Shown here piece by piece: positions 11,278 to 48,950 of a stretch of 64,000 nt of DNA (its first letter is position 1; each line of letters opens with the position of its first letter). The translations under genes were made by a program, and so were the position numbers. The stretch spans positions 1 through 64,000 of the forward strand of contig JAHLWZ010000804.1 of assembly GCA_020536535.1 (NCBI GenBank), read 5' to 3'. The notes beneath the pieces are model-generated. The model made no database searches and was not told the origin of the DNA. It saw nothing but the letters and a program-made list of their open reading frames with translations. The stretch comes from Pelomyxa schiedti (Eukaryota > Protista > Evosea).

Positions 11278-11310
<33 letters not shown>

Positions 11311-11466
11311 AAGCCTGGACCCGCTGAGGTTTCGCTTCCTTCTTCGCGCCGGAGAGAGCGAGAAGGGCGAAGAAGACGACGAGCCGAGGTCCTCAGATTC
11401 GCCCAGCGTGGGAGTCACCGACGGCGTCGGCGCCCGCGGCATCAACCAACCCGCGATAGTGTCCAT
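9113..11466 (-). CDS. DENN-domain protein (Rab GEF family) with low-complexity polyQ/polyT N-terminus
   Basis: FEKFFVVG, ILYQWP and FCFPDG (uDENN); CYCILTAYPFF; ALMMELKIVLIS..LLHPFEW..IIPVLP..VLEAPVPFIVGV (cDENN); FLTALLQSQLF (dDENN). Confidence 0.9.
11268..11310. repeat. CAG/CAA microsatellite encoding polyQ in the DENN protein
   Basis: The + strand (ctg)n/(ttg)n run reads QQQQQQQQQQQQQ on the minus-strand ORF. Confidence 0.9.
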
Positions 11467-28942: not shown

Positions 28943-29801
28943 ATGGGGAATGTGTACTGTCTGGACGACGATCTGGACCCCTCACTAACAACCGTAAATA
29001 CCACTCAACAAACGCTGTGCACAGAAGGCAACTGCAAGACATGTAGTGTTCCTCGATTAGCAGCTTACGAGGTGATTCCGCGGCACAAGGCACTGCATAA
29101 TGTGGGCACTTTTTCTTCTACATACACTGTGATGGCGATCCGTTGTCAATAACAGCCGATTGTGAAAATCGTGCCTTGTAACACTCACTACAGGTATTTA
29201 CGAATTTTGTGCTGGATGACCTTTGCCATTTGGAGCAGGACACGAGAACCCAGGCAGTTTTGTGCCGCAAAATGTGGAAAGAGTGCCACCGTGTGGGCCG
29301 GGGGATTGCAGATAAATCATCATTCACAGAAGCGCTCTCCTGCACTCCACCAGTAAAACGCCTTGAAATGCACAACTTCGAGGCTATGGGCAGGAATGTT
29401 CTGTGCAAGATAGGACTTGAATATTCACATAAACGCTCTGAGCTGTGTGCAGAAATGATCTTTCTCTGTGTTCAGGTTTTCCTCTCGCGGACTTTTATCT
29501 TCTGGGAAGAAGGCTCCTCTCTTGACCCGAAGGTGTTCCCGTCAGTATGTGCCCCCCCCTTTTTTTTTTGGACTCACCACAACTTCACCAGCAAAGTTTG
29601 AATGAAACACAGGTGTTTGTTGTTGATTTTTATGTTCTTCCTGGACTGCACGAGCTTTCCAATGACCAAAGAACAACCCCAGTGGCTTTTGTAAAGTACG
29701 TGCCAGAAAATAAATTAGTGAGTGGTGTTTATGATCGTGTCTGGAAACCACAGCCTTTTGAACTGGGAAAACTTGCTCGAGTCCATGGAAATGGTCTCTA
29801 A
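28943..29801 (+). CDS. Cluster partner protein 1: MGNVYC start plus the shared MIEAP/GrpE-like C-terminal domain; two introns
   Basis: Spliced ..YEVIPRHKALHN|VFTNFVLDDL..QAVLCRKMW..LCAEMIFLCVQVF..DPKVFPS|QSLNETQVFVVDFYVLPGL..VAFVKY. It is clearly paralogous to the genes at 38058, 39235, 35794, 49016 and 50324. Confidence 0.7.
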
Positions 29802-29844
29802 ACTGTAAATTTGCAAAGGATGTGATCCAAAGAAAGAAAATTTT

Positions 29845-32193
29845 TCAGAAGAGCTGGGAGGACAGTGCAGACGAGATTTGGGTGAAAGCATTCAACAGTT
29901 CAGCTCCTGACTTCCCAAATGAAATGTACCCACCAGCAGCAGCAGTCAGCGATTCGAGTTGTACAGTGTCAACATCTTGGCCAAAACCAACCACAAAAGT
30001 TTTCAGTCCACAGTCTTTGTAGTGTGCCTGTAGCAGCTTCATTTCAGCAACACCATTGCCGCACAGCCCATCAGACATGAACAACAAAATGGGTGTCCTC
30101 CCAGCAAACTTATTGTCTCCCCGGGCATCTGCTAGCACTTTGTCACATAGCTCCAAACCAGCTGCAAAATTAGTAGAATGACCGGCATCAGGCTCAAGTG
30201 GGTGATTCAACAAAGTAGATAGAGAACATGTGGGGCTTCTTATTCTAGCTGATGCACTATAGGTCACTATACAAGCACTATCCCCATTCGGGCACTTTAT
30301 GAGTCGGCATTTTGTAAATGCCAGAACTGCTTCTTTGAGTTCTGCCCATTTTTCCCCATACATTGATCCAGATTCATCCAGACAGAACACAATGTGATAC
30401 AGGGGTTCTGGAGGTGCACAGCTGTAAATATTCTCAGTCCACGAGGCAGAGGAGCCAGCAGTTTTGGCCTCAACAGAAATTAATGTGGATCCGAATTGTA
30501 AAGTAACATCAACTGCCCTTCGCTCAACTCTGGATCCAAGGTTAGGGATATTCTTTACCTCCAATCCCCCTTTCACCAAAAAGAGGCCAGGTTCGTCTGG
30601 GTAGAGTATCTCTCGCTTCTTAGACTTGAAGACAGAAAACACCACACTTTCTTGGTTTGGAGTCAAAGGATAAAAAGTTAGGTGGGTAGAGTGCCCAACA
30701 TCAAGGGTATCCCTGCACTTCACGAAAGTTTTCAACACATGACACCGCTTCTCACCTTGCTCAGTTAAAAAGACAAGCCTTCCTGGGTGCTTGCACGCAA
30801 GGTCCGACGTTAGTATGCTGTAGGTGTAAGGAACACATCTCTGGCTTATAGACATGGGGTGTATTCCAAATTCCACAGCACCTTCCGCCACAGCGGAAAT
30901 TGGCCTGTTAGGCCATTTGACAACCAATGGAGAAAGAAAGTCATTGATAACTTGACGATAGATGGGAGAAGCAGCAAATCCGCCAACCAAAAACACTTTG
31001 GGTGAAACAGAACCAGGCAAAACCTCTTTAATACGCTGCCGAATATGCCAACTTGCAATTTCGGCTTGCTTGGAAATAAAATTGGTGAAAACTGCGGGAG
31101 GTAATCGCAGTTCATTGTGTGGACTAAGGTTCACAGGGAGCACTGGATGTTCCAAGTTATACTTCTTGACAAGAACAGGAATTGCTGGCTTGTCAAGTAA
31201 AGCAAGGGTATTCCCAATAGCAGTAAGCTGCAAATTTTGAGTCTCCGCACTACACTTCATCTCCTCAATTTCATCTTCCAACCGAAACCATTCCACATCT
31301 TGCTTTGCTCTTGAAAATACATCCCCACCTTCATCAAAAATGCGGCCCAGAAATGATATTGCAGCGGCGTTTACTTTCGTGGAGCCCCATGGACCGCCTG
31401 TTGGGGGACAAAGCTCACAAAGCTCAGTGGGGGAAGTACACTTGTGCATTGTAATATCGACAGTACCTCCTCCAGCATCAACCATTAAGTATATCGCACC
31501 TGGTGTTAGATCAATTTGGAAAGCCTTCTTTACTGCCAGGGAGGCTGCCTCTGCCTCCAGTACAATCATTACATCAGAAAGCTTAGCCCTCAAACATACA
31601 TCTCGCATAAATAGCCGAGCAGCTTGGTCCCATATGGCAGGGACAGTGACTACCCATTGAACATCACTCTCAGAAAGCCGAGTGAAACCAAGTGTGTTCT
31701 CCATATCCCTCATAGCTTTAGCCTTCACATGTTCAATCACTTTTTGAATAACTACGTCGAGACTCATAGTACGGGCAGGGTACTCAGTGTCAGATACAAT
31801 ATTGTTTCTAGATGACTCCCCTTCCAGATGCATTTTGAAATTTCGGAAATGGTACATGTGGATGCGCTCTGCCGCATCCATGTTTCGCACCCTGTCGCGA
31901 GCCAAATAGCCGAAGGCATCAACCGTGTATTCGATTGTGCCTCCAACGTTCCTTTCCAAAATGAGTACTTCAGTCAGCGTCTTGAAGTTCGTTGTGCCCT
32001 GCCACCGGGACAATTCTGTTGGTGCTTTTCCAGCCATGTCACGGTACGCGAAACCGGTGCCAGAGGTTCCAAAATCAATGGCGCAACTCACTAGCTTGGA
32101 TTCGACGCGCATTGACCCGCTAAGAGCGCGTAGGTTCGGGGTGCTGCACGTCGGTGCAGTTGTAGAGGCAGTAGGAGCTCTTAGTCTCCACAT
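29845..32193 (-). CDS. HSPA12-like atypical Hsp70 fused to a C-terminal vWA domain (copy 1), intronless
   Basis: AIDFGTSGTGFAY; WVVTVPAIWDQ; VLEAEAAS; VDAGGGTVDIT; VFLVGGFAAS; AVAEGAVEFG. vWA part: IVFCLDESGSM..STNFAAGL..ILLFMSDG..TFVVGFG. First ATG is at 32193. Confidence 0.9.
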   Translation of the reverse strand: MWRLRAPTASTTAPTCSTPNLRALSGSMRVESKLVSCAIDFGTSGTGFAYRDMAGKAPTELSRWQGTTNFKTLTEVLILERNVGGTIEYTVDAFGYLARDRVRNMDAAERIHMYHFRNFKMHLEGESSRNNIVSDTEYPARTMSLDVVIQKVIEHVKAKAMRDMENTLGFTRLSESDVQWVVTVPAIWDQAARLFMRDVCLRAKLSDVMIVLEAEAASLAVKKAFQIDLTPGAIYLMVDAGGGTVDITMHKCTSPTELCELCPPTGGPWGSTKVNAAAISFLGRIFDEGGDVFSRAKQDVEWFRLEDEIEEMKCSAETQNLQLTAIGNTLALLDKPAIPVLVKKYNLEHPVLPVNLSPHNELRLPPAVFTNFISKQAEIASWHIRQRIKEVLPGSVSPKVFLVGGFAASPIYRQVINDFLSPLVVKWPNRPISAVAEGAVEFGIHPMSISQRCVPYTYSILTSDLACKHPGRLVFLTEQGEKRCHVLKTFVKCRDTLDVGHSTHLTFYPLTPNQESVVFSVFKSKKREILYPDEPGLFLVKGGLEVKNIPNLGSRVERRAVDVTLQFGSTLISVEAKTAGSSASWTENIYSCAPPEPLYHIVFCLDESGSMYGEKWAELKEAVLAFTKCRLIKCPNGDSACIVTYSASARIRSPTCSLSTLLNHPLEPDAGHSTNFAAGLELCDKVLADARGDNKFAGRTPILLFMSDGLCGNGVAEMKLLQAHYKDCGLKTFVVGFGQDVDTVQLESLTAAAGGYISFGKSGAELLNAFTQISSALSSQLF

Positions 32194-32312
32194 ATCCAAT
32201 AAGACCCCACGCAGTCCAAGACAACTTACTTTGGCTAGGTCGCTTCGCTCTGACAGCAAAGTCTTCTTGCAAAAAAAAAAAATCTTCCACCCCTACTTTT
32301 TCAGAAAATTTG

Positions 32313-34022
32313 ATGGGTCTGCAAGAAAGCACATGCCCACCAAATTTCGTCTGTTGCGCCATAGATTTCGGAACGTCGTACACGGGGTTCGCCTTCCGTG
32401 ATAGGCGTAAGGGCCCTCACTCGCGCGCCGTGATGTCGGATTGGGCCTCGTGCCAATTGCCCAAGACGCCCACCGAGGTTGTTCTGGACGTCGCTCCTCC
32501 CCATGCACTCATCAAGTTTGGGCACGACGCCAGAGTGTATATGAGAAATCTCGACGACGAGGTGTCGATGAAGTGTCTGCATTTCAAGGGCCCGAAGATG
32601 TTGTTGTACGAGCGTTCCAACAGATCGGAGGTTTTCAGCACGAACCAGCCGAGGGTGTCAGTTACTCTGAAGCACCTTGTCACATGCATACTTGGGCATT
32701 TGGTGGAGAAGGCACTGGCTCAGATGAACAGGGACTTCCCCACCAGAATCGAGGAAGTCAAGTGGGTTCTCACTGTTCCCGCAATATGGGACCAGTGTTC
32801 GAGGGCTTTCATGGAGGAATGCGCAACTCGGGCAGGCATTAACAACGTCATACTGGCTTTGGAGCCAGAGGCGGCTTCGGTGGCAATGAAGGACAAACTG
32901 CGCTTTTCTGTTGGAACTAAGTACATACTTGTTGATGCGGGAGGTGGTACTGTTGACATCACAGTTCATGAGACCATCAGTGACACCACTATTGTTGAAC
33001 TGCTTCGTCCATCTGGTGGCCCATGGGGATCAACCAATGTCAATTCTCATTTCTTTAAGCTCATGGAGGATGTTTTTGGGGATGATGTGATTGCCATGGC
33101 AAAGGAAGACGCTTCTGTGTTTGATCTAGAGGATGCTATTGAATCAATGAAGCTTAATCTCTGTGAAGAAGTACCAAAGATCAACATTTCAATGTATTGC
33201 ATTGCTAGGTGCCTGAAGCAGATGTCAAAGCCACCAATTCCTCAAATGATCAACAACTTCAACACATCCCATCCCACAATGGTTAATGCCAAGGGCGAGC
33301 CTCTCCTGTCCCCCCTTCAAGATCACGGAATAAGAATCGACGCATCGTTGATGAAATCCAAGATCAAGCAGCTTGCAACAGAAACGAGCAATCACATCAA
33401 GGACAATCTGTTGCCATCTCTCTCTGGAGTAACTGATGTATACCTAGTTGGTGGCCTGGCAAAGTGTCCGTATTACTACGACACCATGGTTACCTTGCTC
33501 CCGGGTCAATTGAGTGTTCATTTACCAAATGATCCCTTGGTTGCTGTTTTGGAAGGAGCAGTGATTGCTGGGGAGAAAGCTCAGTGCGTGAAAAAAAGAT
33601 GCGTGCCGTACACCTATGCAGTAAGCACAACAGATCTGGCTCCCCGGCACCCTGGAAGGCCCACATTCCTAGTTGACGGGCAGAGGCGCTGCCATGTACT
33701 TCAAACCTTAGTTAGAAGTGGAGATTTAGTTGACACTGAGAGTGAAGTTTCTCTTGCCTTCTCCCCTATCAACCCCGATCAAGACCGCATCACATTCGAT
33801 ATCTTCAAGTCCAAAAAAACAAATGTGGAATACCCTGACGACCCAGGAGTGGAATTGGTCAAAGCAGGACTGCAAGTGAATAACCTCCCCGGCGTTGGCC
33901 TCCCTGTTCAGCAACGCCCACGTGTTACACTGAAGTTCAAGTTTGCCTCCACTATCATTACTGCGCAAGCTGTGTGTCCTGGCTTTCCACCTGTCGTGGC
34001 CAAGTGGAATGAGGGCTTGTAA
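32313..34022 (+). CDS. HSPA12-like atypical Hsp70 (copy A1), intronless
   Basis: AIDFGTSYTGFAF; WVLTVPAIWDQ; LALEPEAAS; VDAGGGTVDITVH; GGPWGS; VYLVGGLA; VAVLEGAV. No EEVD or KDEL tail. Confidence 0.9.
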   Translation: MGLQESTCPPNFVCCAIDFGTSYTGFAFRDRRKGPHSRAVMSDWASCQLPKTPTEVVLDVAPPHALIKFGHDARVYMRNLDDEVSMKCLHFKGPKMLLYERSNRSEVFSTNQPRVSVTLKHLVTCILGHLVEKALAQMNRDFPTRIEEVKWVLTVPAIWDQCSRAFMEECATRAGINNVILALEPEAASVAMKDKLRFSVGTKYILVDAGGGTVDITVHETISDTTIVELLRPSGGPWGSTNVNSHFFKLMEDVFGDDVIAMAKEDASVFDLEDAIESMKLNLCEEVPKINISMYCIARCLKQMSKPPIPQMINNFNTSHPTMVNAKGEPLLSPLQDHGIRIDASLMKSKIKQLATETSNHIKDNLLPSLSGVTDVYLVGGLAKCPYYYDTMVTLLPGQLSVHLPNDPLVAVLEGAVIAGEKAQCVKKRCVPYTYAVSTTDLAPRHPGRPTFLVDGQRRCHVLQTLVRSGDLVDTESEVSLAFSPINPDQDRITFDIFKSKKTNVEYPDDPGVELVKAGLQVNNLPGVGLPVQQRPRVTLKFKFASTIITAQAVCPGFPPVVAKWNEGL

Positions 34023-34150
34023 TATAAAATACTCAATAAAAAGCCGGCGAATAAGGAGAGGCAAAGTGTGTCCCTTTGATAGGGTACACAGTTGTTCCTC
34101 TTTGTCTTCACCAACTTGAAGCTTTCGGCTTTACGTTAAAACCAACTGAA

Positions 34151-35761
34151 ATGCGGATCTCTGTACCAGCACCCACACTCACCAAAAGAGAACCACACGC
34201 ACATCCATCACGTCATCATACGGCGCACGTTGCGGCGACAAGTACAAAGTCATCATCTGCAGCGCCGACTGGGACATTAACCTTAACGCCACACAGGACC
34301 GCTAACCCTGGCCCACAAGCCACAGCGCATGCAGTTGGTCTCCGTCCCACAGCGGAGGTGACGTTCCAGCAGCCCAAACCACCGCCGACGAACTGGTTGT
34401 GCTGCTGCGCGATTGAATTTGGGTTGATATCCGCCGGCTTCGCATTTCGTGACAAACGCAAGGGGAACCCACGCGTGGTGATGGCCGAATGGAACACGCA
34501 GCTTCAGTTTCCGACTACTCCGATCGAGGCGGTAATGGACGCTGCGCCGCCCCACGCGCTCCTCAAGTTTGGTCAGGAGGCGAGAACTTTCATGCAAAAC
34601 GCAGATTCGAAGGTTTCCGGCAATGCTCTGTACTTCAAGGATCTCGGCCACCTTTGCGATGGGAAGACTGAAGTTTTCAGCACGAATCAGCCGCGCGTGT
34701 CTGTTCCTCTGAAGCACTTGGTGACGTGCATTCTCAGCCACTTGGCTCAAAAGGCTCTAGCTCAGATGAGAAGGGATTTTCCGACCGAGATGGACGACGT
34801 GAAGTGGATCATAACTACCCCTGCAATTTGGAATCAGAGTGTCAGAGATTTCATGCAAGAATGCTCATTAAAAGCTGGCATTGTGGGCGGAGTTATCATT
34901 TCTGATTCAGAGGCCGCCTCCGTTGCAGTTAAAACTCATTTTAACATTCCTATTGGAGGCATGTATATGGTGGCAGACTTAAGAGGACCTACTGCTAGCA
35001 TCACAGTTCATAAGTGCCTGGGTGATTCCGTAATTGCCGATATTTACGCTCCCTCTGTCGGCCCTTGGGGAGCAACCTTGATAAATAACTATTTCTTTCA
35101 GCTTATGACAGATATATTTGGAGATGATGTGCTGGCCAAGGCGAAAGAAGACCCTGGTATGTCTGACTTAGAGGAGGAAATCGAGGTCGCTAAGCTCACC
35201 CTCTCCGATTCTGTCCCAAAGGTCAACATCCCAATGGACTGTATTGTTAGCACCCTTCTACAGATGGCAAAGCCACCATTTACGCAAGTAGTCAATAACT
35301 TCAGCGCATCCAATCCCAAAATGGTCGATTCTACTGGTGCTCCTCTTATTTGTACATTTAAACACAAATTAAGAATAGACACATCACTGATCAAATCCAA
35401 GATTGAGGCACTTGCAGCAGAAATGAGTAATCACATCGACGCCAAATTGTTGCCCTCTCTACCAGGGGTCAAAGTTGTTTATCTTGTTGGTGGTAGTGAA
35501 TGTGAGCGGTATCGGATAGCCATGGCCATCAAGCTTGCTGGAAAACTGGAGATTGTGTCTCAATTGCCTCTGACACTTGTTTTAGAAGGAGCAGTACTTC
35601 ACGGGGAGAGGTCATGGTCTGTGAAAAAAGAATACCCAACCCCACACATAACAACTATCCCTGAACGTATTCCAATGCACACTGTGTCAATATGTACTAG
35701 GCATGTACTGAAAGAAGGACCGAGCCCAGAAAAAGACCGCCCTAAAGTAGCAATACGTTAA
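34151..35761 (+). CDS. Degenerate HSPA12-like Hsp70 (predicted pseudo-ATPase, C-terminally truncated), intronless
   Basis: Alignable with the neighbouring Hsp70s (VFSTNQPRVSVPLKHLVTCIL, PAIW, YLVGG, VLEGAV). Phosphate-1 is AIEFGLISAG and phosphate-2 is ADLRGPTASIT. Confidence 0.85.
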   Translation: MRISVPAPTLTKREPHAHPSRHHTAHVAATSTKSSSAAPTGTLTLTPHRTANPGPQATAHAVGLRPTAEVTFQQPKPPPTNWLCCCAIEFGLISAGFAFRDKRKGNPRVVMAEWNTQLQFPTTPIEAVMDAAPPHALLKFGQEARTFMQNADSKVSGNALYFKDLGHLCDGKTEVFSTNQPRVSVPLKHLVTCILSHLAQKALAQMRRDFPTEMDDVKWIITTPAIWNQSVRDFMQECSLKAGIVGGVIISDSEAASVAVKTHFNIPIGGMYMVADLRGPTASITVHKCLGDSVIADIYAPSVGPWGATLINNYFFQLMTDIFGDDVLAKAKEDPGMSDLEEEIEVAKLTLSDSVPKVNIPMDCIVSTLLQMAKPPFTQVVNNFSASNPKMVDSTGAPLICTFKHKLRIDTSLIKSKIEALAAEMSNHIDAKLLPSLPGVKVVYLVGGSECERYRIAMAIKLAGKLEIVSQLPLTLVLEGAVLHGERSWSVKKEYPTPHITTIPERIPMHTVSICTRHVLKEGPSPEKDRPKVAIR

Positions 35762-35793: not shown

Positions 35794-37990
35794 ATGGAGG
35801 AGCTCACACAAATTCTGGCCAGGGAGAAGCTAGAAAAAGACAAAATGGAGCATGCATTTGATGACTTGAAGAAAGACCATGAGAAGATAAAGATTGAGCT
35901 GGCCCGTTTGAAGGCACAACATAATGATCAGTCACTAAGTAAGTCTTCCTTCAGGTGGAAAAATTCCACTTTCTGTTTTGCTTATTTTTTCAAGATCTTC
36001 CCCTGTTCACTAATGCGTCGTTGTTTGTGCTGTCTTCTCCTCATTTGGAACGAAGTATGGAAAGCGCTATCTTTTCGGCTCTTCCAACTCCTTGTGGGCC
36101 CCATCAGATCGACTTGTACAAATTAGTCAGCACACAGAAGGAATACACTGGAAAAATATCAGTGACTCAGCCAGAGTACATATATAGGGAAGTTCTTACC
36201 ACCAACCTGTACCGTGCACTGGGGGTCAAAGCAGCAAAAGCCACGTTGTCACGTTTTAATATTGCCAGCCCTATTTCACGGGACGTCTCAGAACCTAGGT
36301 TTGCCAGTATGACCAAGAAAGTGACACCATTTTATGCGCTTGGCACAGAGTTTGTGCAGAAATTAATGCTACAAAACACAAGGACCACGCCTGTCACCAT
36401 CACTGCACCATACAGGGGTTACTTGCAACTGCCACAGCTTACTGTGGAGGGTCTATGGAAGCTAGCTGCTGTGGCAAAATGGTTCGGTGATACAAACTTT
36501 CTTGGCTGTTCCGGAGACTCTGCAGGATTCAAAGTAATCATGAGAAATCAAAGAACCGGTGATATAGAATCAGTGGCGAGCATCAAGAAAATATTCTCTA
36601 ATTCGAGTGGCGGGGAAATCACGCCCCAAAGCCACCCAACTAAAGGATTTCAGATGAAGGACATCACCTTTGGCTCCGACAACCAGTACATACCCTTCCG
36701 GAGTCTCTGTTCCCTGGAGAGAGATGAATTCCTCAGTACAGTTCGTGAAATTATTCAGATGTCTGAAGGTGATATCACTTCACTGGTACTGACCAAGGCA
36801 TGTCTAATACCTGTGACAACAGCCAATACTCCTGGTGAGATCATCGCCGTGAAAGAAGTTGTGGATCGATCCGTAATAGCATCTCTCATTTCCAGGCAGC
36901 AGGAACTAAGAGAGATATACCATGACGAACTGTTCAAGGATCAAATACTAGTCACAAGATCTATTATTCCAAATCTAGCATCCCCAAATCCACCTCCCCA
37001 AAAGACAAGCGCTAATACAAGAGTGAGGCCCCTCCCTCCCATCCCTCTCCCACCTGTGTCTCTTTTCACACTGAAGCCTGAGACTTCACATGAAACGTCA
37101 GTTACCGACAGTAAGCGCACGCAGCCCGAAACCCCTGCCATAAACAATACATCACCATCCAGCACAAGCAAGAGAAACGATGACGAAAAAAGCTCTCGGC
37201 AATCAGTGGTTCTCAGCTTTTCAATGTCACCTGCCCCCAAATTTTCTCAAATAGAACTCGGACATTCACCAATTTGGCCGCAACCGGCTTCTCAATTTTC
37301 ATTATCTGGATATCGACCCCAGATTGCAGCTCCTTGTCAAGATAACTCTCTTGGAGTGATGCTTCAACCTTATGTGTCTTTGGCAAGTGCCAAGAAACTA
37401 GACGTAGATTCTCTTCCACCTGCCCCATTCCCACTACCAGTTGAAATGTGGCGCCATCAGTCGTATGACGACATCGCCCTCCTGTGGGAAAACCTCCGTA
37501 ATGTAAGTGTCACTTCAAAATTGTCACTAATTATCTTGTACAGGACATGATAAACGTTGCACTGGATGTTCTCCCATCCATGGGACTTTGCAGTCCTACT
37601 GAGAAAGCTCAATTCGTGAAGCGCATTTGGGACTTTTTCCACAACAAAACCGTGACTCTGTTAGAGCAACAGCAAAAGGGGCAATCTCCAGAAGGGGATA
37701 TCGTCCAAGCATCAGTTGTCTCTTTCACGAGCCAATTGCGTGGACTCAACACCCAGGACACCAGCGTAATGGGTGACTTGTGTGAACTCATTTTGAACCT
37801 CTGCTTTTGCACTGTGGGGCGGGATGGCTTCTGGCTCACATACCCACAAGTTGGTGACACATACAACTCACAAGAAATGGAGCCATTTCTTTTTGACCAA
37901 GGAACTGCTGGTACAGTCGCACTCTGTGTGATCCCTGAGGTTCATTGTGCCCCAAGAGGCAGTGTGCCTGCCCTTGTTCTCCTCGAGTAA
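35794..37990 (+). CDS. Cluster partner protein 2: coiled coil + degenerate PI4K/HipA-like kinase-fold region + Pro/Ser-rich linker + shared C-terminal domain; two introns
   Basis: Coiled-coil N-terminal exon; YREVLTTNLYRALGVKAA and WFGDTNFLGCSGDSAGF; spliced LRN|DMINVALDVL..KAQFVKRIW..YNSQEMEPF..VALCVIPEV. Confidence 0.7.
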
Positions 37991-38057: not shown

Positions 38058-39195
38058 ATGGGTCACAGGTGCAGCACAGCATTCGCCGTAGAACCAGAAA
38101 ACAGCAGAGTTCAACCGGCACAAAAACACGGCGATCCTTCCACTTTGCAGGTTGCATCAGCCGCACCCCAGTCTGCACAAACCGACTGTCCCCGCGCCCC
38201 CACTGATCGTCACCGCCACTACCACTACCACGATCGCGACCACGACCACGGCCACCACCGCCATCGGCACGGGCACGGGCACGAACACGGGTCCAAGGAG
38301 CGAGTTGGAGCAGAGGACCGACACGGCAACAGCCGCAAGCATCAAGGCCATAACCAACATCGCCGTGGCCATCGGAAAGAACCAACATGTCTGTCTTCTC
38401 GCTGCTCCTATTCTAGTCGTAGCGTTCGTGTCCCTGTCCACAAGCACATCAAAAAACCCTTGCCGCGGCAGCATCGGCGGAGAACGCGAGGCCTCTGGTA
38501 TCACGTCACTCCGGTGGCGCCGCACGAGGTGGACCTCAGACACAGTGCGCTGATAAATGTGTGCGCCTTTGTGCCGCCCACAATCCCCGTACTGCTCACA
38601 ATTTACCCCAAAAACCATGCAGATATTTGTTAACTTCGTGGTGGATGACCTCGACGACATGGAGAAGGACTGCAGGAAGCAAGCACACTTTTGCCGGAAA
38701 ATGTGGAATCTGTGTACCTCTGTTGGACTCGACACTGCCAGACATTCCACCAGTAATCAACCGTACACATCATCCACAGCTACAAGCACAAGCACAAGCG
38801 ACAAACACAAGGAACAAGAGGAGCCGCTTGGACAAGAGCAGCTCGAGACACTCAGTCACCGTGTTCTGTCAGATTTGCATCTGCCAATCACGAAGCAGAG
38901 GACCCAGCTCTGTGCTGCTATGATCTCCCTTTGTGTTCAGGTATATATCTCAACAGATATGTTCTCGTTCTGGGAGCCATCTGAAGGCACTGTGCTACCG
39001 GCAGTGGCTCCTTTTGATGTAGAGGTGTTTCCTTCTGTATGTCTAAACATATGTTCTTTGCTGTGCACTAACATTTCAAAGCAAAGCTGGGATGAAACTC
39101 GAAGGTTGGGTGTCGATTTTCATGTAATTCCTGGGCTGTGCTTCCAGGGCAACAACAGAAAAACTAAACCCATTGTATTTGTCAAGTATTTGTAA
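38058..39195 (+). CDS. Cluster partner protein 3: MGHRC start, His-rich insert, shared C-terminal domain; two introns
   Basis: DRHRHYHYHDRDHDHGHHRHRHGHGHEHG; spliced HEVDLRHSALIN|IFVNFVVDDL..QAHFCRKMW..LCAAMISLCVQV..VEVFPS|QSWDETRRLGVDFHVIPGL..IVFVKYL. Confidence 0.75.
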
Positions 39196-39234: not shown

Positions 39235-42200
39235 TTAAACTTGGTCCAAGAAAACCACTGCCTTTTGGTTTGCAAAACCAGGCAGTACACACATCAGCAC
39301 TGTGCCAGACTCGCTAGCCGGCTGTGACAAGAATCACCTTCAGAAAGAGAAAAGAGGGAGAACATACAGCGTATTGAGGGAAAATTTGCATTATCGAACC
39401 ATCAAATTCAGAACCCGGCACGACAGATTGAGGGCTGTAAACTGTTCCAGTACTACTATTTTGTGGGAAACAGTTCACACATAGTTTTAGAGCTTCCTTG
39501 CATATGGGTTGAAAGCAACTGTGAAGTTTTGTAGCCTTGTCAAGAAGCTTCTTGGCAGTGTGGTTCAGCATGGCGTCATCGATGCAGTATCCATAGTTTG
39601 TGCTCAGGCTCTTACTCATATCAAAGCAGTGCGCCCACATTTCCTTGCAGAGCTCGGCCTGTTTCATTGGTTCCGGGTGGTATTTAGAAAGGGTGTCCAG
39701 CACAAAGTTGGTAAAGACAGTTTCGAAGAAACACTTGGCGCTTGTCACAAGTTCATGAGGATGAGGAGGAGCTCGAGTCGGAACAATTGGGATGGAGGGA
39801 GTGGGGCACAGTGTTAATGCCGGAGATGCGGGGATTAGCTTTGTCAATCTCTCCACCTCAGCTTTCAGTTGCGAGACTTCTTTTTCCTTTTCACGCAATT
39901 CGTTCCCCTGTGTTTCCAGTGATTTCTCCAGTTCCTCCACACGAGTTTTCAAGGCAGTACTATCTGTTTGCGTGCTGAGCTCAATGGCGGGCGTAGGAGC
40001 GATAATGGGAGGCTGAGTAAGAACTCTGACAAGGCGTTCAGTTACAACTGTGGTGTTTTCTTGAACGTATAAGGAGAAACGCTTATTAAAGGCTGATGTT
40101 CTCTTCTCAACTTCAGTTTGCAGTTCTATTATCAGATTGTTTAGAGACTCCTCATTAAACATAGATGTTCCAGTCTCAACGTGATTTTGTTCCAAGAGTA
40201 GAAATTTTTTTTGAATGTCTTGCTTGAACTCAAGTGCTTTACTTAGCAACTTCTTGCTTTCTATCTCCAGTGCTGTTCTCTGCTCAAGAATCTCAGGTAG
40301 AGCATTCCCAAATTCGGCAGGAGTTTGCAGTAAATAGATGGAATTTGTTAGCCATATTATGGCTTCCAAACAGAGCACATTCAAGTCTCTCACAAGTTCT
40401 TCTTTGTCTTCTTCTTCCTTCAGCAGAGTTTCAAGTGCAATTCTTCGGTTTTTTCCATCTCTGTTTAGCATTTTATATGCTTGTAACACATCGTTGAAAG
40501 AACTTTTCACTGCCTAATAATGGCGTGGGAACGAACAGGGAAAAAAAAAAAGCGTGAACCTCAGATCCACGAAAGTTATCATGAATCAGAGCTTGAAACT
40601 TTGTAGTTACCCCATTTAGTGAGAAAGTCTTTATCTCCTCTGCAATTCGCCATTCTTGGTTGATCTACACGAAAAAAGACTTAAAAACTGAGAGTGATGT
40701 GTGACTGAGACCTGCTCATGAACGGCACACAAGGAAAGATTTTGAGAAATGGGCCTTTGTGATCTTGCAGCACACCAGGATCGTATCCTCTCAGCTTCAG
40801 CAACAAACTCTTTATGGACGGCATCAAGACGTTGTTGTCTACAGGGAGAATGAAAAACGGATATAGAATCATAGCACTAACTTTTGACTTTCCTGTCTAA
40901 GTTCCAGCAACCGTGAGTTCACGAATGAGCCCATTTCAGACCACATGGTCTCAATCTCAGATTTTGTTATCGACAGTGGCATGACAGGTGGAAGAGGGTC
41001 AAGGCCGGTAGTCAATAAGTCGAAAAGAGCTATAATTTGCGTTTTTTCGGCAAGTTTTTTTTGCTGTGTTAGACTGAAAGTCCGGAAGGGTTCATCCAAA
41101 CAATGAGCACCTTGAAGTGGGTCGAAATGTAATAGCTGGAATCGTTTCACTTCTTCTTTTATCCAGTTCTTCAACTATTCCATTGTAAACAAAGTAAAAA
41201 CAAGAGAGCAGTCACCTACCGCTGAAGACGAACTGGAATAGAACTCCGCAAGTGAGAACTGCATAGACTTCCACCACTCGGTAAATTCTTGAAAGAGGGT
41301 ATTGTATTCCTCTAACTGTCTAGTTGTTTTTGAACTGCTTATCTCAGTATCTTGGCTTTGGATCTCCTGGGCGAGGCTCTCCAGGTCTCTGATTTGACCG
41401 TATAGAACCCGTGATTGCTCTATACAATCCCGAGCACATCCAGTACTACTTTCAGAGAGCTCACGAGTAATAAACTTGTAAGATGAATTTCGGGTGAGCC
41501 CTCTCAGTGCTTCCTTTCTGAGTGCTACTGCTTCAGTATACTTCGTGCACCTTACAACGAAGCCCGAGATCATCGAGCACTTCTTCTGACTCTCTGTTAT
41601 TGTGTATGTTAATTTGTTGAACCACTCGGTGACCTCTTGTTTCTCTTCGCATAAGGCAGCTAGGGCGTTTGGGGGGTTCACTACTATTTTCGGCAAAATG
41701 TTATCCAGCTCTGCAATTGTTTTGGCGGCATCTGCTTTAGCTTCCTCAATACTCTTCAGTTTGCGGGTTGCCTCATCTAAACTGACGCTAAATATAGGCT
41801 GATTAATAGTTGATATCGTGTCTCTGACCCTCTGGCAGAATGTAGTAGATTTTGCATGATAGGCATGTAAGGCTTCATTAGAGCTTTCCCTTACCAGAGC
41901 TCGTGCAAGCTCTTGGGCTTTCTCAGTTTTCAACTTGTGAAGAGCTTGCCATTGACTTTTTAGGCCCAATAGTATGCTTTGAACTTCCTGGCCACAATTA
42001 AGTCATCGTAATGCATATTAAAAGAAAACTGTCCACCTGTTTTTTGCTGAAATCACTTGCAACCAAGCGTAGATATGCACTTTCTGCTGCAAGTACTTTT
42101 TTTTCACATTCAGGCCATTCCATTTCAATTCGACTCATTGATTGCTCCTGAGTAATAATTAGACCCTTAAACCAGGAGCAGTTACCTGTTCCTGTGCTTC

Positions 42201-44552
42201 TTTCAATGAACTTATTTCTCTAAAAGAGGAAAGTGCTTTCTGAGTATGTACAATGCTCTTTTCAAGCTCAGTTACTGATGTGGAAAAAATTATATACTCT
42301 ATGTCGATTTGTCTGGGAATGTCTTAGGTTCCAACTTATGTTACCGAACTTAGAAACCTTTTCAGTTGAGAATTAGCTGCATCACTGTAGGAATTTTCCA
42401 GATTTTCCATGTACTGCCAGCTCTTCAGAATCTCAGGGATAGGTGACGGCGAGCAATTAAACTGCCCGAGCATTTCAAAAATTTTCTCAAGTTTCTCTTT
42501 ATCTCCTTTCTGTTGATTCTTTTCGTTATAGTACTGCTTCATGTAACTAGCAGCAATAACACAAGAGAGTATACTGTCAAATTTTGGAACCTCTGCAAAT
42601 TTCGCTATCTGCTGCATCATCCATTGCATAATCTAAGGGAGATAAGTTCCATTTTTGAAGGCACCCACCAACATTGTTGGCCCTTATGTGCCACTCCTCA
42701 TTAAGTGATCTGAGATTTTGAAAAATTGCAGTGTGCTTTGTTGTAATATTCTCTTCCAACGTGGCCACTGTGATTCGGAGGTTTTCATTTTCAGTCCTTC
42801 CTGTGGCCAGTCGTAGTTTTGTGGATTTAACTGCAAGCTCCCGTAGTGCTGTGAGCCTTTGTAATTTTGGGTTCCAAATGCACTTTAATTCGTGTAGCCA
42901 TAGAAGAGGCTCTGCCATCTCTCTAATAGGCTCAGAGAATTTCCCACTCAATGAAAGATAGGTTCGAACCCCAGCCGATTCTTTTTCAAATTGCAGCTCT
43001 GTGCGGTAAATATCCAGCAAATCTCCCAAGGTTTTTCCCACTTCCGCAAACTGGGATCGCACATTCTCACATGGGGCATGGAAGTTATTCAACTTGGCAC
43101 GCGCCTCTTGAATTTCACTGCCTCTAGTTATGTAGTCGGACTCCTGTGTGCATTCGGGAAAGGGAGCTTCCCACTCTAAGGTTTTTTTCTTTGCCCAAAT
43201 ATAGAGGAGAGTGGTTTCAATGACTAGCTGTAGTTTTTTTTTGCCTTTCTTAATGTCTGCATAAGTTTGCTTCAGCTTCTCACAGATAATCTGGGTAAGT
43301 AAGATGAAACTTTAATATTAGGAAATATCGACCTTGCTACTAGAAGTAGCGTACTTGGAAGCTAATCCACTCATCTGTTGGGAAATAGTACCATTGTATT
43401 CATCTTTGTATTTTCGAGAGAGATCATACTTGAGAAAGTTAATTCGGAGCCTTCTCTTTTAAATACCTGGTCTTGTGCTTCAGTCAAACAGGTAAAAGTG
43501 AGAGAAAGTGAGAGGGTCTTCCTACACCAGTCCCGTATCAGGCTCAACTCGAGGCTTTGTGAAAAATCGGACTCACTAAATTAGATATGAAAATTTCAGT
43601 GTTCAAGAATTTGGGCCACCTCTGTATTTCATTGTAGAACTGTTCGTAGTCATGTTTGACTTGTTTTTCCAGTTCCAGCCAATACTGCTCGATATCGGGG
43701 ATGTCCAGCATGGAAGATGACTGGTCACTTCTACAGTCCAACTGCTCGAGACATTTTTTAAGGTACAGCGAGTCAGATTTCTTTGTGTCTTCATCACAAA
43801 CAAACTGCATATATTTTGCTTCCAGAGATTGTGTGCTGGGAGCAACATCCTGACTCCTTTGAAAGAGGGTCTTATTTGCCATTGTCCACGTCACCACCTT
43901 TAATACAGAAATACAAGATGTGATGAAATATATGAGGAGCAATCAACAAGGGCGGAAAATTCGTGCCTTGCGTAAAAGTGTTGTTATTATCTCCTTCAGA
44001 TGTTCAATGACAAACTTGTTCAAGATCGAGAGCGAAACAGCTGCAAGAGTATCAGATGGACAATCACCAAAACTTTGCTGTATTTCATGCAATTTCCCGT
44101 CAAGAGTGCACAACCCCTGAACCATTTGATGTGCCTCTGGAAGGCCACACATATGAAATACTTCTTTTATGTCTTCCACATAGGGGGCTTCTGTGAAGCT
44201 CAGAATTTTGTCTTTTGCTTGGGTGAATGTAGCTGTATATTTGACAACTTCCTCGTCGCAATATTTGGATATCCTCTGTGTTGCACTTTGCCACACTAAT
44301 TTCCAGGAATCAAGGGACTGGGATTCCTTCTCCTTCTTGTTTTTTTTTTCGTTTGTTTGTTGGTTTGTTTACAGAAACAAGAATGATGCTCTGTTTACCA
44401 CAACGGCAATGTGATCGCGCAAACGACAAATCTTTGTTAAGTCAACCAAAGGATCAGGCTAGAGAACCACCTACCATCTCTTCTGCATCGCACAAAGAAT
44501 TGATAGGTCCACCAAACGCGGGGGTGTCGTTTCGCTCCCCTACGGTTGCCAT
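39235..44552 (-). CDS. Cluster partner protein 4: long spectrin-repeat-like helical rod + coiled coil + shared C-terminal domain; many introns
   Basis: Helical repeats with periodic Trp (LTQAQDQVFKRE, EVTEWFNKL, FQEFTEWWKSM, EAERIRSWCA). A plausible splice GSE|AVKSSFND joins the ORF at 39314-40510, which lacks its own ATG. The end reads VFTNFVLDTL..QAELCKEMW..EFDGSIMQIFPQYA|PASESGTVLMCVLPGFANQKAVVFL. Confidence 0.65.
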
Positions 44553-44636: not shown

Positions 44637-47024
44637 CTACACAGAGTTAAAAAACTGGGAACACAGTGAGGAAGAGATGTGAGTGAAGGCATGCAACAGC
44701 TCAGTGCCGTTTCGGCCAAAGGAAATGTATCCACCAACAGCAGCAGCAAGGGATTCCAGCTGAGCGGTGTCCACATCAGTTCCAAAGCCAACCACAAACG
44801 TCTTCAGGCCGCAGTCTTTGTAGTGTGAGTGAATGAGCTTCATTTCAGCCAGGCCGTTCTTGCAAAGCCCATCAGACATTAAAATCAGAATTGGTGTCCT
44901 GCCGCCAAAGTTATTGGTCCCCCTGGCTTGCATCAGAGCGGTGTCACATAGTTTCAAACCCGCCGCGAAACTTGTTCCCCCACCAGAACGGGAGTGGAGT
45001 GGGTGCCTTTGCAAACTGGAAAGAGGGCCGTTTGGCCTTCTTATTCTAGCCGTGCTGCTATAGGTAACTATACAGGCAGTATCACCGCAATTTCCATCAG
45101 GAAATTTTTCGAGCCGGCGTGTTACAAATGCGTTTACTGCCTCCTTGAGTTCCTCCCATTTGGTTCCTTTCATAGAACCAGATTCATCCAGACAGAATGC
45201 AATGTGGTAAAGCGGCTGTGAAAGTGGATTACTATAAATACTTTCACTCCAGGAGGCGGAAGAGCCAGTAGCTTCGGCTTCAACATGAATTAGAGTAGCT
45301 CCAAATTTTAAGGTAACATTGATTGCCCTTTCCTCGACTCTGGCACCAACATTAGGAATATTTCTCACCTCCAATCCTCCTTTCACCAGAAAAACGTCAG
45401 GATCATTTGGGTAAAGTATGTCTTTCTTCTTAGACTTGAAGACAGAAAACAACACAGTCTCTTGAGTTGGAGTGAGGGGATAAAAGGTTGCACTGGTTGG
45501 TTCTTCAATTTCTAGATTATCCCTGTATCGAACAAAAGTTTTCAACACATGGCATCGTTTCTGTCCTTGCTCAGTCAAAAAGGTTAGCTGTCCTGGATGC
45601 TTGGATGCAAGTTCCGATGTGAGAACCGCATAAGTGTAAGGAACGCACCTCTGCGTGATAGACATTGGCTGTATGCCAAATTCCACGGCACCTTCTAAAA
45701 CTGCAGAAATTGGGTTGTTTGGCCACTTGACTACATGATCAGGGAGGGCTTTCTGGATAAAATTGCGATAAATTGAGCTTGCGGCAAATCCTCCAACCAT
45801 GAATACTTTGGGGAGAACTTTGGTTTCAAGAGGAATCTCGTTAATAAGGTGCTGAACATGGTTGCTTGTTATTTGTGCTTGCTTGGTAATGAGATCGTTG
45901 AAAACAGAAGGGGGTAGTCGTAGTTTCATATTCTGTAGATTTTTAACCTGTTGCTCAGGATGTGACAAATTCCACTTGTCTATAAGAGCCGAAAATGTTG
46001 GTTTATTAAGTTTGACTAACGCGTTCTTTATACAGAGAACACCCAAGTTTTGGATGTATCCTACTTCAGCAGATATTTTTTTGGTCTCAATATCATCTTC
46101 CAATACAAGCCAATCCGCATCTTGTTTTGCTTGTTCAATTACATCCCCCCGTTCATCAAAAATACTGCCTATGAAAGAGATGACGTCACTATTGACCTTG
46201 GTGGAACCCCACATTCCGCCTGAAGGAGGGTAAAGCTCGCGAAGTTCAGTAGGAGACAGGTACTGATGTACTGTAATATCAACGGTTCCTCCACCCGCAT
46301 CCACCATCAAGTATACCGTACCTGGGGTTAACTCTGATTGTAGGTCCTTTCTTATAGCAAGAGATGCAGCTTCTGGCTCCAGGGCAATCATTACATCTGA
46401 AAGATGAGCCTGCAAACATGTATCTCGCATCATAAGTCTGGCAGCTTGATCCCAGATGGCAGGGACAGTTACTACCCACTGAACACTCGTCTCGGAAAGA
46501 TTGGGGAAGAAACGAGACATTTGTGTCATGGCCTGGTCTCTGACGAATTCAACCACCTTCTGAATCACACGCTCCAAACTCATAGTCCGGTGTGGGAACT
46601 CTGCATCAGATAGCTGTTTATTGCGGTCTCCTTCTCCTTCAAGTTGCATTTTGAACTGGCGGAAATGATAGATACCTCGGCGCTCTTCGTCATCCATATT
46701 TTTCACCATATTGCGCGCCTCAATTCCAAAGGCAATAACCACGGGTCCTGTAGGAGTTTCCTTGATAATAACCTCAGTGAGGGTTTTGGGGCTCGATGTA
46801 TACTGCCATATCGACAGCACGGCCGACGGTAGTACAACACCGGCTATGTCCCGAAAAGCAAAACCGGTACCCGAAGTGCCAAAGTCAATGGCGCAGCACA
46901 CTAGTTTGGTTTCTACACGCATAGAACCGTGCATGCTAGCTGAGCTTTTGATCTTGACGGATGGTGTTGAAACGGGAGCAGAGACGGTCGGAACCGATTT
47001 AGTTGGAAAGCTGCGGTGATACAT
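44637..47024 (-). CDS. HSPA12-like atypical Hsp70 fused to a C-terminal vWA domain (copy 2), intronless
   Basis: AIDFGTSGTGFAF; VTVPAIWDQ; IALEPEAAS; VDAGGGTVDIT; VFMVGGFAAS. vWA part: IAFCLDESGSM..GTSFAAGL..ILILMSDG. Paralogous along its full length to 29845-32193. Confidence 0.92.
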   Translation of the reverse strand: MYHRSFPTKSVPTVSAPVSTPSVKIKSSASMHGSMRVETKLVCCAIDFGTSGTGFAFRDIAGVVLPSAVLSIWQYTSSPKTLTEVIIKETPTGPVVIAFGIEARNMVKNMDDEERRGIYHFRQFKMQLEGEGDRNKQLSDAEFPHRTMSLERVIQKVVEFVRDQAMTQMSRFFPNLSETSVQWVVTVPAIWDQAARLMMRDTCLQAHLSDVMIALEPEAASLAIRKDLQSELTPGTVYLMVDAGGGTVDITVHQYLSPTELRELYPPSGGMWGSTKVNSDVISFIGSIFDERGDVIEQAKQDADWLVLEDDIETKKISAEVGYIQNLGVLCIKNALVKLNKPTFSALIDKWNLSHPEQQVKNLQNMKLRLPPSVFNDLITKQAQITSNHVQHLINEIPLETKVLPKVFMVGGFAASSIYRNFIQKALPDHVVKWPNNPISAVLEGAVEFGIQPMSITQRCVPYTYAVLTSELASKHPGQLTFLTEQGQKRCHVLKTFVRYRDNLEIEEPTSATFYPLTPTQETVLFSVFKSKKKDILYPNDPDVFLVKGGLEVRNIPNVGARVEERAINVTLKFGATLIHVEAEATGSSASWSESIYSNPLSQPLYHIAFCLDESGSMKGTKWEELKEAVNAFVTRRLEKFPDGNCGDTACIVTYSSTARIRRPNGPLSSLQRHPLHSRSGGGTSFAAGLKLCDTALMQARGTNNFGGRTPILILMSDGLCKNGLAEMKLIHSHYKDCGLKTFVVGFGTDVDTAQLESLAAAVGGYISFGRNGTELLHAFTHISSSLCSQFFNSV

Positions 47025-47177
47025 GGTCGGCTAATACTTTTTTCGGGCTGGTGCTTGCCACTATGGTTGGTTTTTTACAGGTTTTGAACACCGGTTTTTT
47101 TTTTCTTTCGGTGTGTAGCTTGGTGGCGGGAACAAAGTTGGTTTGTTCTGCACACAGTAAACTAAATTTGGACAGTG

Positions 47178-48950
47178 ATGGCAGGCGTGACCATCCAACC
47201 GCAGGCCACTGCGCCCTCGCCCTCGGTGGCAACTGCCTCTACCACAAAAACCAAGGTGTGCTGCGCGATAGATTTCGGCACCTCGTTCACCGGGTTTGCG
47301 TTTCGTGACAAGCGCAAGATCGGCAACCAACGCATTGTGATGGCCGAATGGAACTCACAACTGCTGCACCCGAAGACGCCGACCGAAGTTGTTCTCGCCG
47401 CGGCGCCGCCTCACGAGCTTGTCGAATTCGGACACGAGGCCAGGACCTACATGCGAAACCTCGACGCGGCGGTGGCTCGAACCGTTTTGCACTTCAAGGG
47501 GTTCAAGATGCTTCTTTACGGGAATGACAAGAAGACTGAGGTTTTCAGCACGAATCAGCCGCGTGTGTCGGTTTCTCTGAAGCACTTGGTGACGTGCATT
47601 CTCAGCCACTTGGCTCTAAAGGCTCTGGCTCAGATGAGAAGGGATTTTCCGACCGAGATGGACGACGTGAAGTGGGTCATAACTGTCCCCGCAATTTGGG
47701 ATCAGAGTGCAAGAGCTTTCATGCAAGAATGCGCCACTGGAGCAGGGATGAAGCAGGTGGTCCTTGCTTTGGAACCAGAGGCCGCTTCTCTTGCCGTGAA
47801 GGCCAACCTGAATTTTCCCATCGGCACCAAATACATCCTCGTTGACGCGGGTGGTGGCACCATCGACATCACGGTGCACGAGTGTATAAGTACAACTCAG
47901 ATTGCGGAGCTTCACCGTCCAACTGGTGGCCCATGGGGATCGTCCTTTATAAACGAGTATTTCTTTCAGCTCATGGGCGAGGTATTTGGAGAGGACGTGG
48001 TGACCAAGGCGCAAGAAGACCCCGGTATATTTGACTTGGAGGACGAAGTCGAAGGAATGAAGCTCACTCTTTCTGATTCCATCCCAAGACATAACATTTC
48101 AGTTTATTGCATCGTCAGCCTCCTTTCACAGATGTCAAAGCCACCTTTTTCTCAAGTAGTCAACGACTTCAATAAATCTCATCCCAAACTGGTTGATGTT
48201 AATGGCACTGCTTCTATTCTCACCCTTCAGAATCATAAACTCAGAATTGATGCCGCCCTGATTAAAGCCAAGATCGAGAAGCTTGCTGCAGCAACAAGCA
48301 ATCACATCCAAGCCAACTTGCTGCCATCTCTGTCTGGAGTCAAGGTTGCTTACCTTGTTGGCGGTCTGAGTAGGTGCGAGTATTACCGCCAAGTTATGAA
48401 GACACAGCTCACTGGCAAATTGGAAGTTGAGTCACCAACTGATCCTTCCGTTGCTGTATTAGAGGGGGCAGTGCTCTTCGGGGAGTCAGTGATTGGGGAC
48501 TCAGTTGGGAGTGTCAAAAAACGATGCATGCCACATACCTATGCAGTTAGTACCACAGACCTCGCACCACGACACCCTGGAAGGCCCACATTCCAAGTCG
48601 ATGGGCAGAGGCGGTGCGAAGTACTCCAAGTCCTAGTCAGAAGCGGCGAGTCACTTGACAGTGACAGCGAGATAGGTCTGGAGTTTTCACCCATTAGCTC
48701 TGACCAGGACAGCATCACATTTGATATTTTCAAATCCGCAAAGCCCAATGTGATGTACCCTGATGAGAAAGGTGTGGAACTGGTCAGGGCTGGACTTCAA
48801 GTAAACAACCTCCCTGGTGTTGGTCTACCTGTTAAGCAGCGCCCACATATTACTTTGAAGCTAAAGTTTGCCTCCACCATTATTACCGTTCAGGCTCTCT
48901 GTCCCGGTTTCCCCCCCATTGAGGCCAAGTGGAAAGAAACTCTGGAATAA
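47178..48950 (+). CDS. HSPA12-like atypical Hsp70 (copy A2), intronless
   Basis: AIDFGTSFTGFAF; WVITVPAIWDQ; LALEPEAAS; VDAGGGTIDITVH; AYLVGGLS; VAVLEGAV. Paralogous to 32313-34022. Confidence 0.92.
   Translation: MAGVTIQPQATAPSPSVATASTTKTKVCCAIDFGTSFTGFAFRDKRKIGNQRIVMAEWNSQLLHPKTPTEVVLAAAPPHELVEFGHEARTYMRNLDAAVARTVLHFKGFKMLLYGNDKKTEVFSTNQPRVSVSLKHLVTCILSHLALKALAQMRRDFPTEMDDVKWVITVPAIWDQSARAFMQECATGAGMKQVVLALEPEAASLAVKANLNFPIGTKYILVDAGGGTIDITVHECISTTQIAELHRPTGGPWGSSFINEYFFQLMGEVFGEDVVTKAQEDPGIFDLEDEVEGMKLTLSDSIPRHNISVYCIVSLLSQMSKPPFSQVVNDFNKSHPKLVDVNGTASILTLQNHKLRIDAALIKAKIEKLAAATSNHIQANLLPSLSGVKVAYLVGGLSRCEYYRQVMKTQLTGKLEVESPTDPSVAVLEGAVLFGESVIGDSVGSVKKRCMPHTYAVSTTDLAPRHPGRPTFQVDGQRRCEVLQVLVRSGESLDSDSEIGLEFSPISSDQDSITFDIFKSAKPNVMYPDEKGVELVRAGLQVNNLPGVGLPVKQRPHITLKLKFASTIITVQALCPGFPPIEAKWKETLE

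Follow-up and report, generated by a model that had tools for sequence, protein, structure and literature searches.

How a von Willebrand factor A (vWA) domain came to stand at the end of an Hsp70, and what it might do there, is the question raised by two genes of the anaerobic amoeba Pelomyxa schiedti. Both lie in the stretch of 64,000 nucleotides analyzed here, positions 1-64000 of contig JAHLWZ010000804.1 in assembly GCA_020536535.1 (the window). Other eukaryotic genes of the contig encode DENN, RRM and GDI domains. A preliminary description of the window had proposed an Hsp70-vWA fusion at 29845-32193, present a second time at 44637-47024. We recovered both genes, each as one continuous open reading frame (ORF), of 782 and 795 amino acids, and found a third full copy on another contig. 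The two fusion genes of the window, A1 and A2, are as follows.

29845-32193, minus strand: A1, intronless fusion of an HSPA12-like Hsp70 with a vWA domain, 782 amino acids plus stop (ORF, Pfam, fold)
44637-47024, minus strand: A2, second fusion gene, 795 amino acids (ORF, Pfam, alignment; a 795-residue gene in the source assembly)

The two proteins are 63% identical over their full length. The frame of A1 is open upstream as far as a TTG at 32259; residues are numbered here from the preferred ATG at 32193, which aligns with the start of A2. Pfam assigned both proteins a C-terminal VWA/VWA_2 domain with E values of 4e-11 to 6e-11 and gave a weak HSP70 match at the N terminus, and the NCBIfam matches to DnaK and HscA were all below threshold. 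An AlphaFold2 model of A1, built from a checked alignment, had a mean predicted local distance difference test score (pLDDT) of 90.5 and a predicted template modeling score of 0.75. The Hsp70-vWA architecture of A1 and A2 is thereby confirmed far beyond chance, and the parts of the protein lie as listed below.

32107-32193, minus strand: A1 N-terminal extension, about 29 residues, basic, Ser/Thr-rich, without acidic residues (pLDDT below 50, composition)
30859-32106, minus strand: A1 nucleotide-binding domain (NBD), residues 30-445 (VIA Z 24-27 against Hsp70 NBDs, motif table)
30430-30849, minus strand: A1 sandwich resembling the beta part of the substrate-binding domain (SBD-beta), residues 449-588, without a helical lid (structural alignment with DnaK and BiP)
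30400-30429, minus strand: A1 linker IYSCAPPEPL, residues 589-598, where the vWA-less paralogs stop (pLDDT 62-69, alignment of the C terminus of paralog B1)
29857-30399, minus strand: A1 vWA domain, residues 599-779 (Pfam VWA/VWA_2, domain fold with pLDDT 92, Foldseek)
30364-30378, minus strand: DxSxS motif of the A1 metal ion-dependent adhesion site (MIDAS), DESGS, residues 606-610 (translation, subfamily conservation)
30172-30174, minus strand: A1 MIDAS threonine T674, in HSTNF (translation)
30070-30072, minus strand: A1 MIDAS aspartate D708, in MSDG (translation)
44640-45209, minus strand: A2 vWA domain, with DESGS at 45174-45188 followed by GGGTSF and MSDG

The Hsp70 part had been described as HSPA12-like, an NBD with a short beta-sandwich, and both the sequence matches and the AlphaFold2 fold support this. 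VIA-align placed residues 34-589 of the model on residues 2-503 of DnaK and 28-529 of BiP, with Z of 27 over about 460 residues and a root mean square deviation of 4-5.5 A; the superposed Hsp70 structures were mostly in ATP-like docked states. The NBD, interdomain linker and SBD-beta of canonical Hsp70s (DnaK, BiP, Hsc70) thus superpose with A1, and because of this superposition we identify the beta domain of A1 as SBD-beta. The A1 residues 449-588 align with about 393-503 of DnaK, and no helices lie between residue 588 and the vWA domain. Since residues 34-589 superpose on DnaK 2-503, the vWA domain starts where the canonical SBD-alpha lid starts, and the C terminus of the vWA-less B1 aligns with A1 residue 589, the first of the linker. 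The positional part of the proposal that the vWA replaces the lid therefore holds topologically; its functional part would have the vWA recruit clients where a lid or a J-protein otherwise would. A1 differs from canonical Hsp70s in having neither the SBD-alpha lid nor an EEVD tail, and shares only 17-20% identity with them.

The NBD is actin-like and has the phosphate-1, phosphate-2 and adenosine motifs together with the catalytic Lys and Glu. The ATPase motifs kept in A1 are AIDFGTSGTG, the lysine of FKM, LEAEAAS, DAGGGTVD and LVGGFA, and in the motif table they are intact in A1, A2, a partial fusion copy (A4) and the vWA-less paralogs B1 and B2, whereas they fail in A3 and B1', two further copies described below. 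Residues 1-27 of A1 are disordered in the model. The N termini of A1 (32107-32193) and A2 (46920-47024), some 30-35 residues each, are Ser/Thr/Pro-rich and basic and contain no acidic residue; in composition they are like an organelle-targeting presequence.

The nearest homologs of the Hsp70 part are HSPA12 proteins, not DnaK or Hsc70. A word-indexed search of 5.8 billion proteins returned paralogs from the same genome, a P. schiedti "70 kDa heat shock protein, partial", and HSPA12A-like proteins of bivalves, insects and protists, which were 24-32% identical over the first 70% of A1. For HSPA12A proteins the identity was 27-32% along the entire Hsp70 part. By shape, the best ESM Atlas clusters were HSPA12A (template modeling (TM) scores 0.65/0.73) and HSPA12A-like (0.66/0.86, residues 21-589), so that HSPA12A, HSPA12B and their invertebrate relatives are nearest by both sequence and shape. 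They share with the Pelomyxa proteins the lidless layout of an NBD and an SBD-beta-like domain, and the motif variants TVPAIWD, LEPEAAS and DAGGGTVDIT. They differ in that none of the HSPA12-like proteins retrieved has a vWA domain, and the Pelomyxa genes form a clade of their own.

Numerous actinobacterial "Hsp70 family proteins" are also HSPA12-like. These are proteins of about 600 amino acids with HSP70 and DUF8340 and no vWA, 24-25% identical to A1 over the NBD and beta domain, and represent prokaryotic kin of the HSPA12 lineage. One is encoded on the Streptomyces plasmid NZ_CP107922.1 (L002 4986-6776), and next to each of the plasmid-borne genes, on its downstream side, comes a hypothetical one of about 230-240 amino acids. 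No vWA is encoded by the genes that follow the Streptomyces homologs. A tblastn search of plasmids found only such vWA-less actinobacterial proteins and one haloarchaeal vWA, and a word search that started from the Streptomyces protein found HSP70 with DUF8340, with VWA in none of the 120 best matches.

The vWA domain has the Rossmann-like alpha/beta fold expected of its class (Pfam; a profile search of the Protein Data Bank, E 3e-16; domain pLDDT 92), and Foldseek related its model to CMG2, BatB and Rpn10 with TM scores of 0.65-0.70. Translation verified the MIDAS residues that had been reported for both copies, namely DESGS, the threonine (STNF or GTSF) and SDG. The pattern DxSxS...T...D is complete in A1 and A2, and in A3 the threonine is replaced by lysine. 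Sequence, profile and Foldseek searches of solved structures returned generic MIDAS vWAs only, for example PTMP1, collagen VI, CMG2, integrin I, BatB and Rpn10. An exhaustive hidden Markov model search of 1.84 billion representatives with a profile of the two copies gave 1958 matches at E<=1e-3, 257 of them at E<=1e-10, and revealed a subfamily with the signature YHxxFCLDxSGSMxGxPW...GGTxF...LLFMSDGG..NGE.E...IGFG. The MIDAS columns are near-invariant in 45 members of this subfamily.

Besides the paralog in the window, the best matches (E 1e-33 to 1e-25) were short proteins of 200-340 amino acids and the C-terminal vWAs of giants of about 2450-2560 amino acids with SecA_DEAD/P-loop_SecA ATPase domains. 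The giants come from Arcella, Pyxidicula, Endostelium, Nematostelium, Mesostigma, an acoel and many metagenomes. In those examined (P0028, P0029, P0033, P0040, P0055, P0056 and others) the ATPase lies near residues 1700-2270 and the vWA at the extreme C terminus; Pfam matches nothing in the N-terminal stretch of roughly 1700 residues, and the family is apparently uncharacterized. Among mid-length relatives the partner domains were a SecA-like P-loop, URGCP/GBP/RHD3 GTPases, RING, NHL and Copine. Pfam HSP70 occurred in none of 33 such relatives, and phmmer found an HSPA12-like NBD in none of the 149 top foreign vWA matches. The comparison with TerY, VwkA and MoxR partners made in the preliminary description is an analogy, the nearest vWAs being the C-terminal ones on eukaryotic SecA-like ATPases and GTPases. 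A TerY- or VwkA-type vWA was considered for A1 and rejected on the same relationships; the vWA-TerF-like Pfam model matched weakly in 4 of the 33 relatives and in neither A1 nor A2.

The fusion genes do not stand alone. The window contains three vWA-less paralogs, and two more fusion copies lie on a second contig, at a locus designated L001.

32313-34022, plus strand: B1, vWA-less HSPA12-like paralog, head-to-head with A1 (ORF, Pfam, alignment)
47178-48950, plus strand: B2, vWA-less paralog, head-to-head with A2 (ORF, Pfam)
34076-35761, plus strand: B1', third vWA-less paralog, its ATPase motifs degenerate (motif table, source annotation)
32194-32312, no strand: divergent intergenic region of A1/B1, with an A-run (A2/B2 counterpart at 47025-47177)
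L001 6001-8370, plus strand, contig JAHLWZ010000500.1: A3, third full fusion copy, 789 amino acids
L001 3905-5737, plus strand, contig JAHLWZ010000500.1: A4, partial fusion copy, cut by an assembly gap

In the A1/B1 pair 119 bp separate the two start codons, in the A2/B2 pair 153 bp, and the short A1/B1 region is presumed to be a shared promoter. The head-to-head arrangement is repeated on the second contig as B(-)/A(+), which places the A/B unit at three loci. The heat-shock element GAAnnTTCnnGAA had no match in the whole window, where 1.0 is expected by chance; this gives no support for classical heat-shock control and is weak evidence against it. B1' follows B1 and is 62% identical to B2, with the degenerate motifs AIEFGL and ADLRGPTAS and with the lysine lost. 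In the source annotation it is merged into a 2074-residue multi-exon model running to 39195; the model could be an artificial joining of genes in the annotation or a genuine pseudo-Hsp70 fusion. No gene model on record corresponds to the exact B1 product. A3 has AVEIGT and DAGSYSID, with loss of phosphate-1 and phosphate-2, and the adjacent, near-identical A4 keeps its motifs. A fragment identical to the C-terminal part of the A3 vWA recurs after an N gap at about 11190-11403(+) of L001, and represents either the end of A4 out of its place or a duplication introduced by the assembly.

In a tree of the Hsp70 part, the vWA-bearing A proteins formed one clade with an SH-aLRT support of 97 and the vWA-less B proteins another with a support of 100. 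Together they made up a Pelomyxa-only clade (100) within the eukaryotic HSPA12-like sequences, with the actinobacterial homologs as the outgroup. The vWA tree put A1-A3 in one clade (100), sister (91) to the group of SecA-containing giants. These relationships indicate that, once A and B had arisen by duplication, a vWA domain was appended a single time to the C terminus of an HSPA12-like gene, and that the A/B unit was duplicated afterwards; a single event is concluded from the two trees and from the end of B1 at A1 residue 589. The fusion apparently arose in the Pelomyxa lineage. Between A1 and A2 the dN/dS ratio was 0.20 in the NBD and 0.18 in each of the other two domains, the beta domain and the vWA, at a dS of about 1.0-1.5, which is near saturation; pN is nevertheless far below pS. 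All three domains of the fusion are under purifying selection.

The same pair of domains exists in bacteria. The language-model neighbors of A1 were bacterial ESM Atlas clusters of proteins of 676-751 amino acids, in which about 100% of members carry HSP70 and VWA or VWA_4. At least seven to nine such clusters, with 53-270 members each, come from Bacillota, Actinomycetota and Myxococcota, and they bear only the automatic name "Hsp70 family protein". They have the Pfam pair of the amoebal genes (HSP70 and MreB_Mbl with VWA or VWA_4) at a similar length, and since the alignment spans A1 residues 33-781 (TM 0.51-0.56, 469-531 residues) the N-to-C order of their domains is apparently the same. Their TM scores are lower than that of the vWA-less HSPA12A, and they are absent among the detected nearest relatives of either Pelomyxa domain. 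Since the nearest relatives of each Pelomyxa domain are eukaryotic, the amoebal fusion seems to have converged on the bacterial one, as an independent invention judged by a comparison at the cluster level. The preliminary description had recognized no characterized Hsp70-vWA fusion, and in the literature searched with "Hsp70-vWA" and related phrases we too found no paper; conflict-system papers that cover vWA and HSP70 (including PMC7159879 and PMC8195603) handle them as separate components. Its further expectation, that the architecture would not turn out to be common and already annotated, stood only in part: because the bacterial clusters carry HSP70 and VWA, the pair is neither unique nor unannotated, only uncharacterized.

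We consider it probable, on balance, that A1-A4 are a Pelomyxa-specific family produced by a one-time addition of a vWA to a lidless HSPA12-type Hsp70, and that they act as an ATP-driven machine in which the vWA serves for targeting or as an adaptor. The Hsp70-vWA protein would be an Hsp70-type machine in which the NBD and SBD-beta cycle between conformations, driven by ATP, and this cycle is coupled to metal-dependent partner binding by the vWA. The vWA would contact an acidic residue of its partner through the coordinated metal, and would in this way tether the NBD/SBD-beta unit to one particular protein or assembly, serving as a targeting or adaptor module within the same chain. The A protein probably works with its presumably co-transcribed B paralog. 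By analogy, we infer that the vWA is a metal-dependent partner-recruiting module of the Hsp70, comparable to the partners of MoxR AAA+ ATPases and to the other NTPase-vWA proteins of the same vWA subfamily. MoxR ATPases couple with MIDAS vWA adaptor partners (PMC7159879), and the logic of RavA-ViaA and other MoxR-vWA systems would be common to both, an ATP-driven chaperone-like motor with a MIDAS vWA adaptor. These systems differ in having another ATPase fold and usually separate polypeptides, and in being prokaryotic; no homology is implied. The SecA_DEAD/P-loop_SecA giants of Amoebozoa and other eukaryotes are closer in that they carry the same vWA subfamily at the C terminus of an NTPase (E to 1e-31, 33-41% identity), and differ in that the motor is a SecA-like helicase-type ATPase and not an Hsp70.

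Every HSPA12-like gene at both loci is flanked by genes with a repeated domain of about 140 amino acids. It occurs at the following positions.

29182-29598, 37502-37987, 38557-39192, 49813-50277 and 51261-51752, plus strand: copies in the window
L001 8801-9274, minus strand, and 10618-11040, plus strand: copies on the second contig

The domain follows the pattern N..D...A.....W...C...C..P, with "..KMW.." and "MEVFPS..CVIPG". It had no Pfam match, even at E up to 5, and an ESM Atlas feature search placed it near MIEAP (PF16026) clusters at 0.90-0.91. The family may be a dedicated partner of the Pelomyxa HSPA12-like Hsp70s. Directly downstream of A2 on the same strand, the source annotation has a 1539-residue gene (39235-44552, minus strand) with no Pfam match.

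Several observations weigh against the reading of A1-A4 as an ATP-driven machine. The family has been found so far in one species, whose genome was assembled from single cells. When a query of 4,401 letters was compared with one RNA run and three genomic runs, the contigs of the RNA run covered only 33497-34092, the 3' end of B1, and none covered A1. Because the linker is of low confidence in the model, the orientation of the vWA relative to SBD-beta in it is only tentative. The ATPase motifs have been lost in A3 and B1', and A3 has also lost the MIDAS threonine; since these copies lost their motifs, the family tolerates dead members, and therefore a scaffold or decoy role fits as well as a chaperone role.

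Dead members would also be accommodated if the proteins were the NTPase-plus-adaptor of a fast-evolving cluster for immunity or for surveillance of organelles or symbionts, and not a usual chaperone. The vWA would then serve for oligomerization or signaling, and the dead copies as regulators or decoys. We regard this as possible though rather unlikely. It is in keeping with the occurrence of the vWA subfamily on GBP/URGCP-type GTPases, RING and NHL proteins and giant SecA-like ATPases, with the tandem birth-and-death evolution seen in the 63% identical paralogs and the degenerate A3 and B1', and with the repeated domain of the neighboring genes, which is MIEAP-like by language-model features. 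HSP70 domains are also part of the expanded immune and apoptosis architectures of the oyster (PMC8195603), and several prokaryotic endosymbionts live in Pelomyxa (PMC10579272). However, A1, A2, B1 and B2 had no match when scanned against the PADLOC anti-phage defense models, no effector domain was detected, the resemblance to MIEAP has no counterpart in Pfam, and an immune role is pure analogy. At the mechanistic level such a role is compatible with the targeted, ATP-driven machine proposed above. A more specific version of that machine seems to us improbable, namely that the A/B pair is a two-subunit, J-protein-independent Hsp70 in which the MIDAS vWA is a metal-dependent replacement for the lid. 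The MIDAS metal would then clamp an acidic residue that belongs either to the B protein or to a client bound in SBD-beta, and the neighboring genes with MIEAP-like domains might supply dedicated clients or adaptors.

It is very doubtful that an already fused Hsp70-VWA gene was acquired from a bacterium by horizontal transfer. Pelomyxa lives alongside bacteria, and the bacterial fusions are both the top language-model neighbors of A1 and alignable with it from residue 33 to residue 781. Against transfer, the closest companions of the Hsp70 part in its tree are the vWA-less Pelomyxa paralogs and eukaryotic HSPA12-like proteins, with the actinobacterial homologs outside; the TM by query is higher for vWA-less HSPA12A clusters than for the bacterial fusions; and the closest foreign vWA relatives lack an HSPA12-like NBD (0 of 149) or, at mid-length, a Pfam HSP70 domain (0 of 33). 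We give as little credence to the vWA being a separate gene, or to the loci being decaying pseudogenes or assembly artefacts. The assembly is from single cells and contains N gaps and the duplicated vWA fragment on L001, the exact A1 product, with either of its two candidate starts, is not among the recorded gene models, and GenBank has A3 as a "heat shock 70 kDa protein, partial" of 573 residues that ends before the vWA. Yet one open frame is kept across the junction in three independent paralogs, as the continuity noted earlier for A1 had suggested, and A2 is called as a gene of 795 residues. The vWA has a dN/dS of 0.18, and single contigs without indels span 29700-33896 in all three genomic runs. 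Because the GenBank model of A3 stops at 573 residues, its vWA was missed there; as a practical point, the vWA is thus lacking from the public model of one copy.

HSPA12-type Hsp70s are widespread, hugely expanded in some animals, lidless and mechanistically obscure, and we know of no J-protein logic for them. In the Pelomyxa family the lid has its place taken by a domain whose binding site, the MIDAS, is well understood and can be mutated, which would offer a handle on SBD-beta function and on targeting. Should the two-subunit arrangement be true, it would represent a novel mechanism for gating the substrate site of an Hsp70. Hsp70 and vWA were probably combined on at least two occasions, in bacteria and also in an amoeba, and with this pairing Hsp70 would join the AAA+ MoxR, SecA-like and GBP-like proteins among the NTPases that have recruited a vWA domain.

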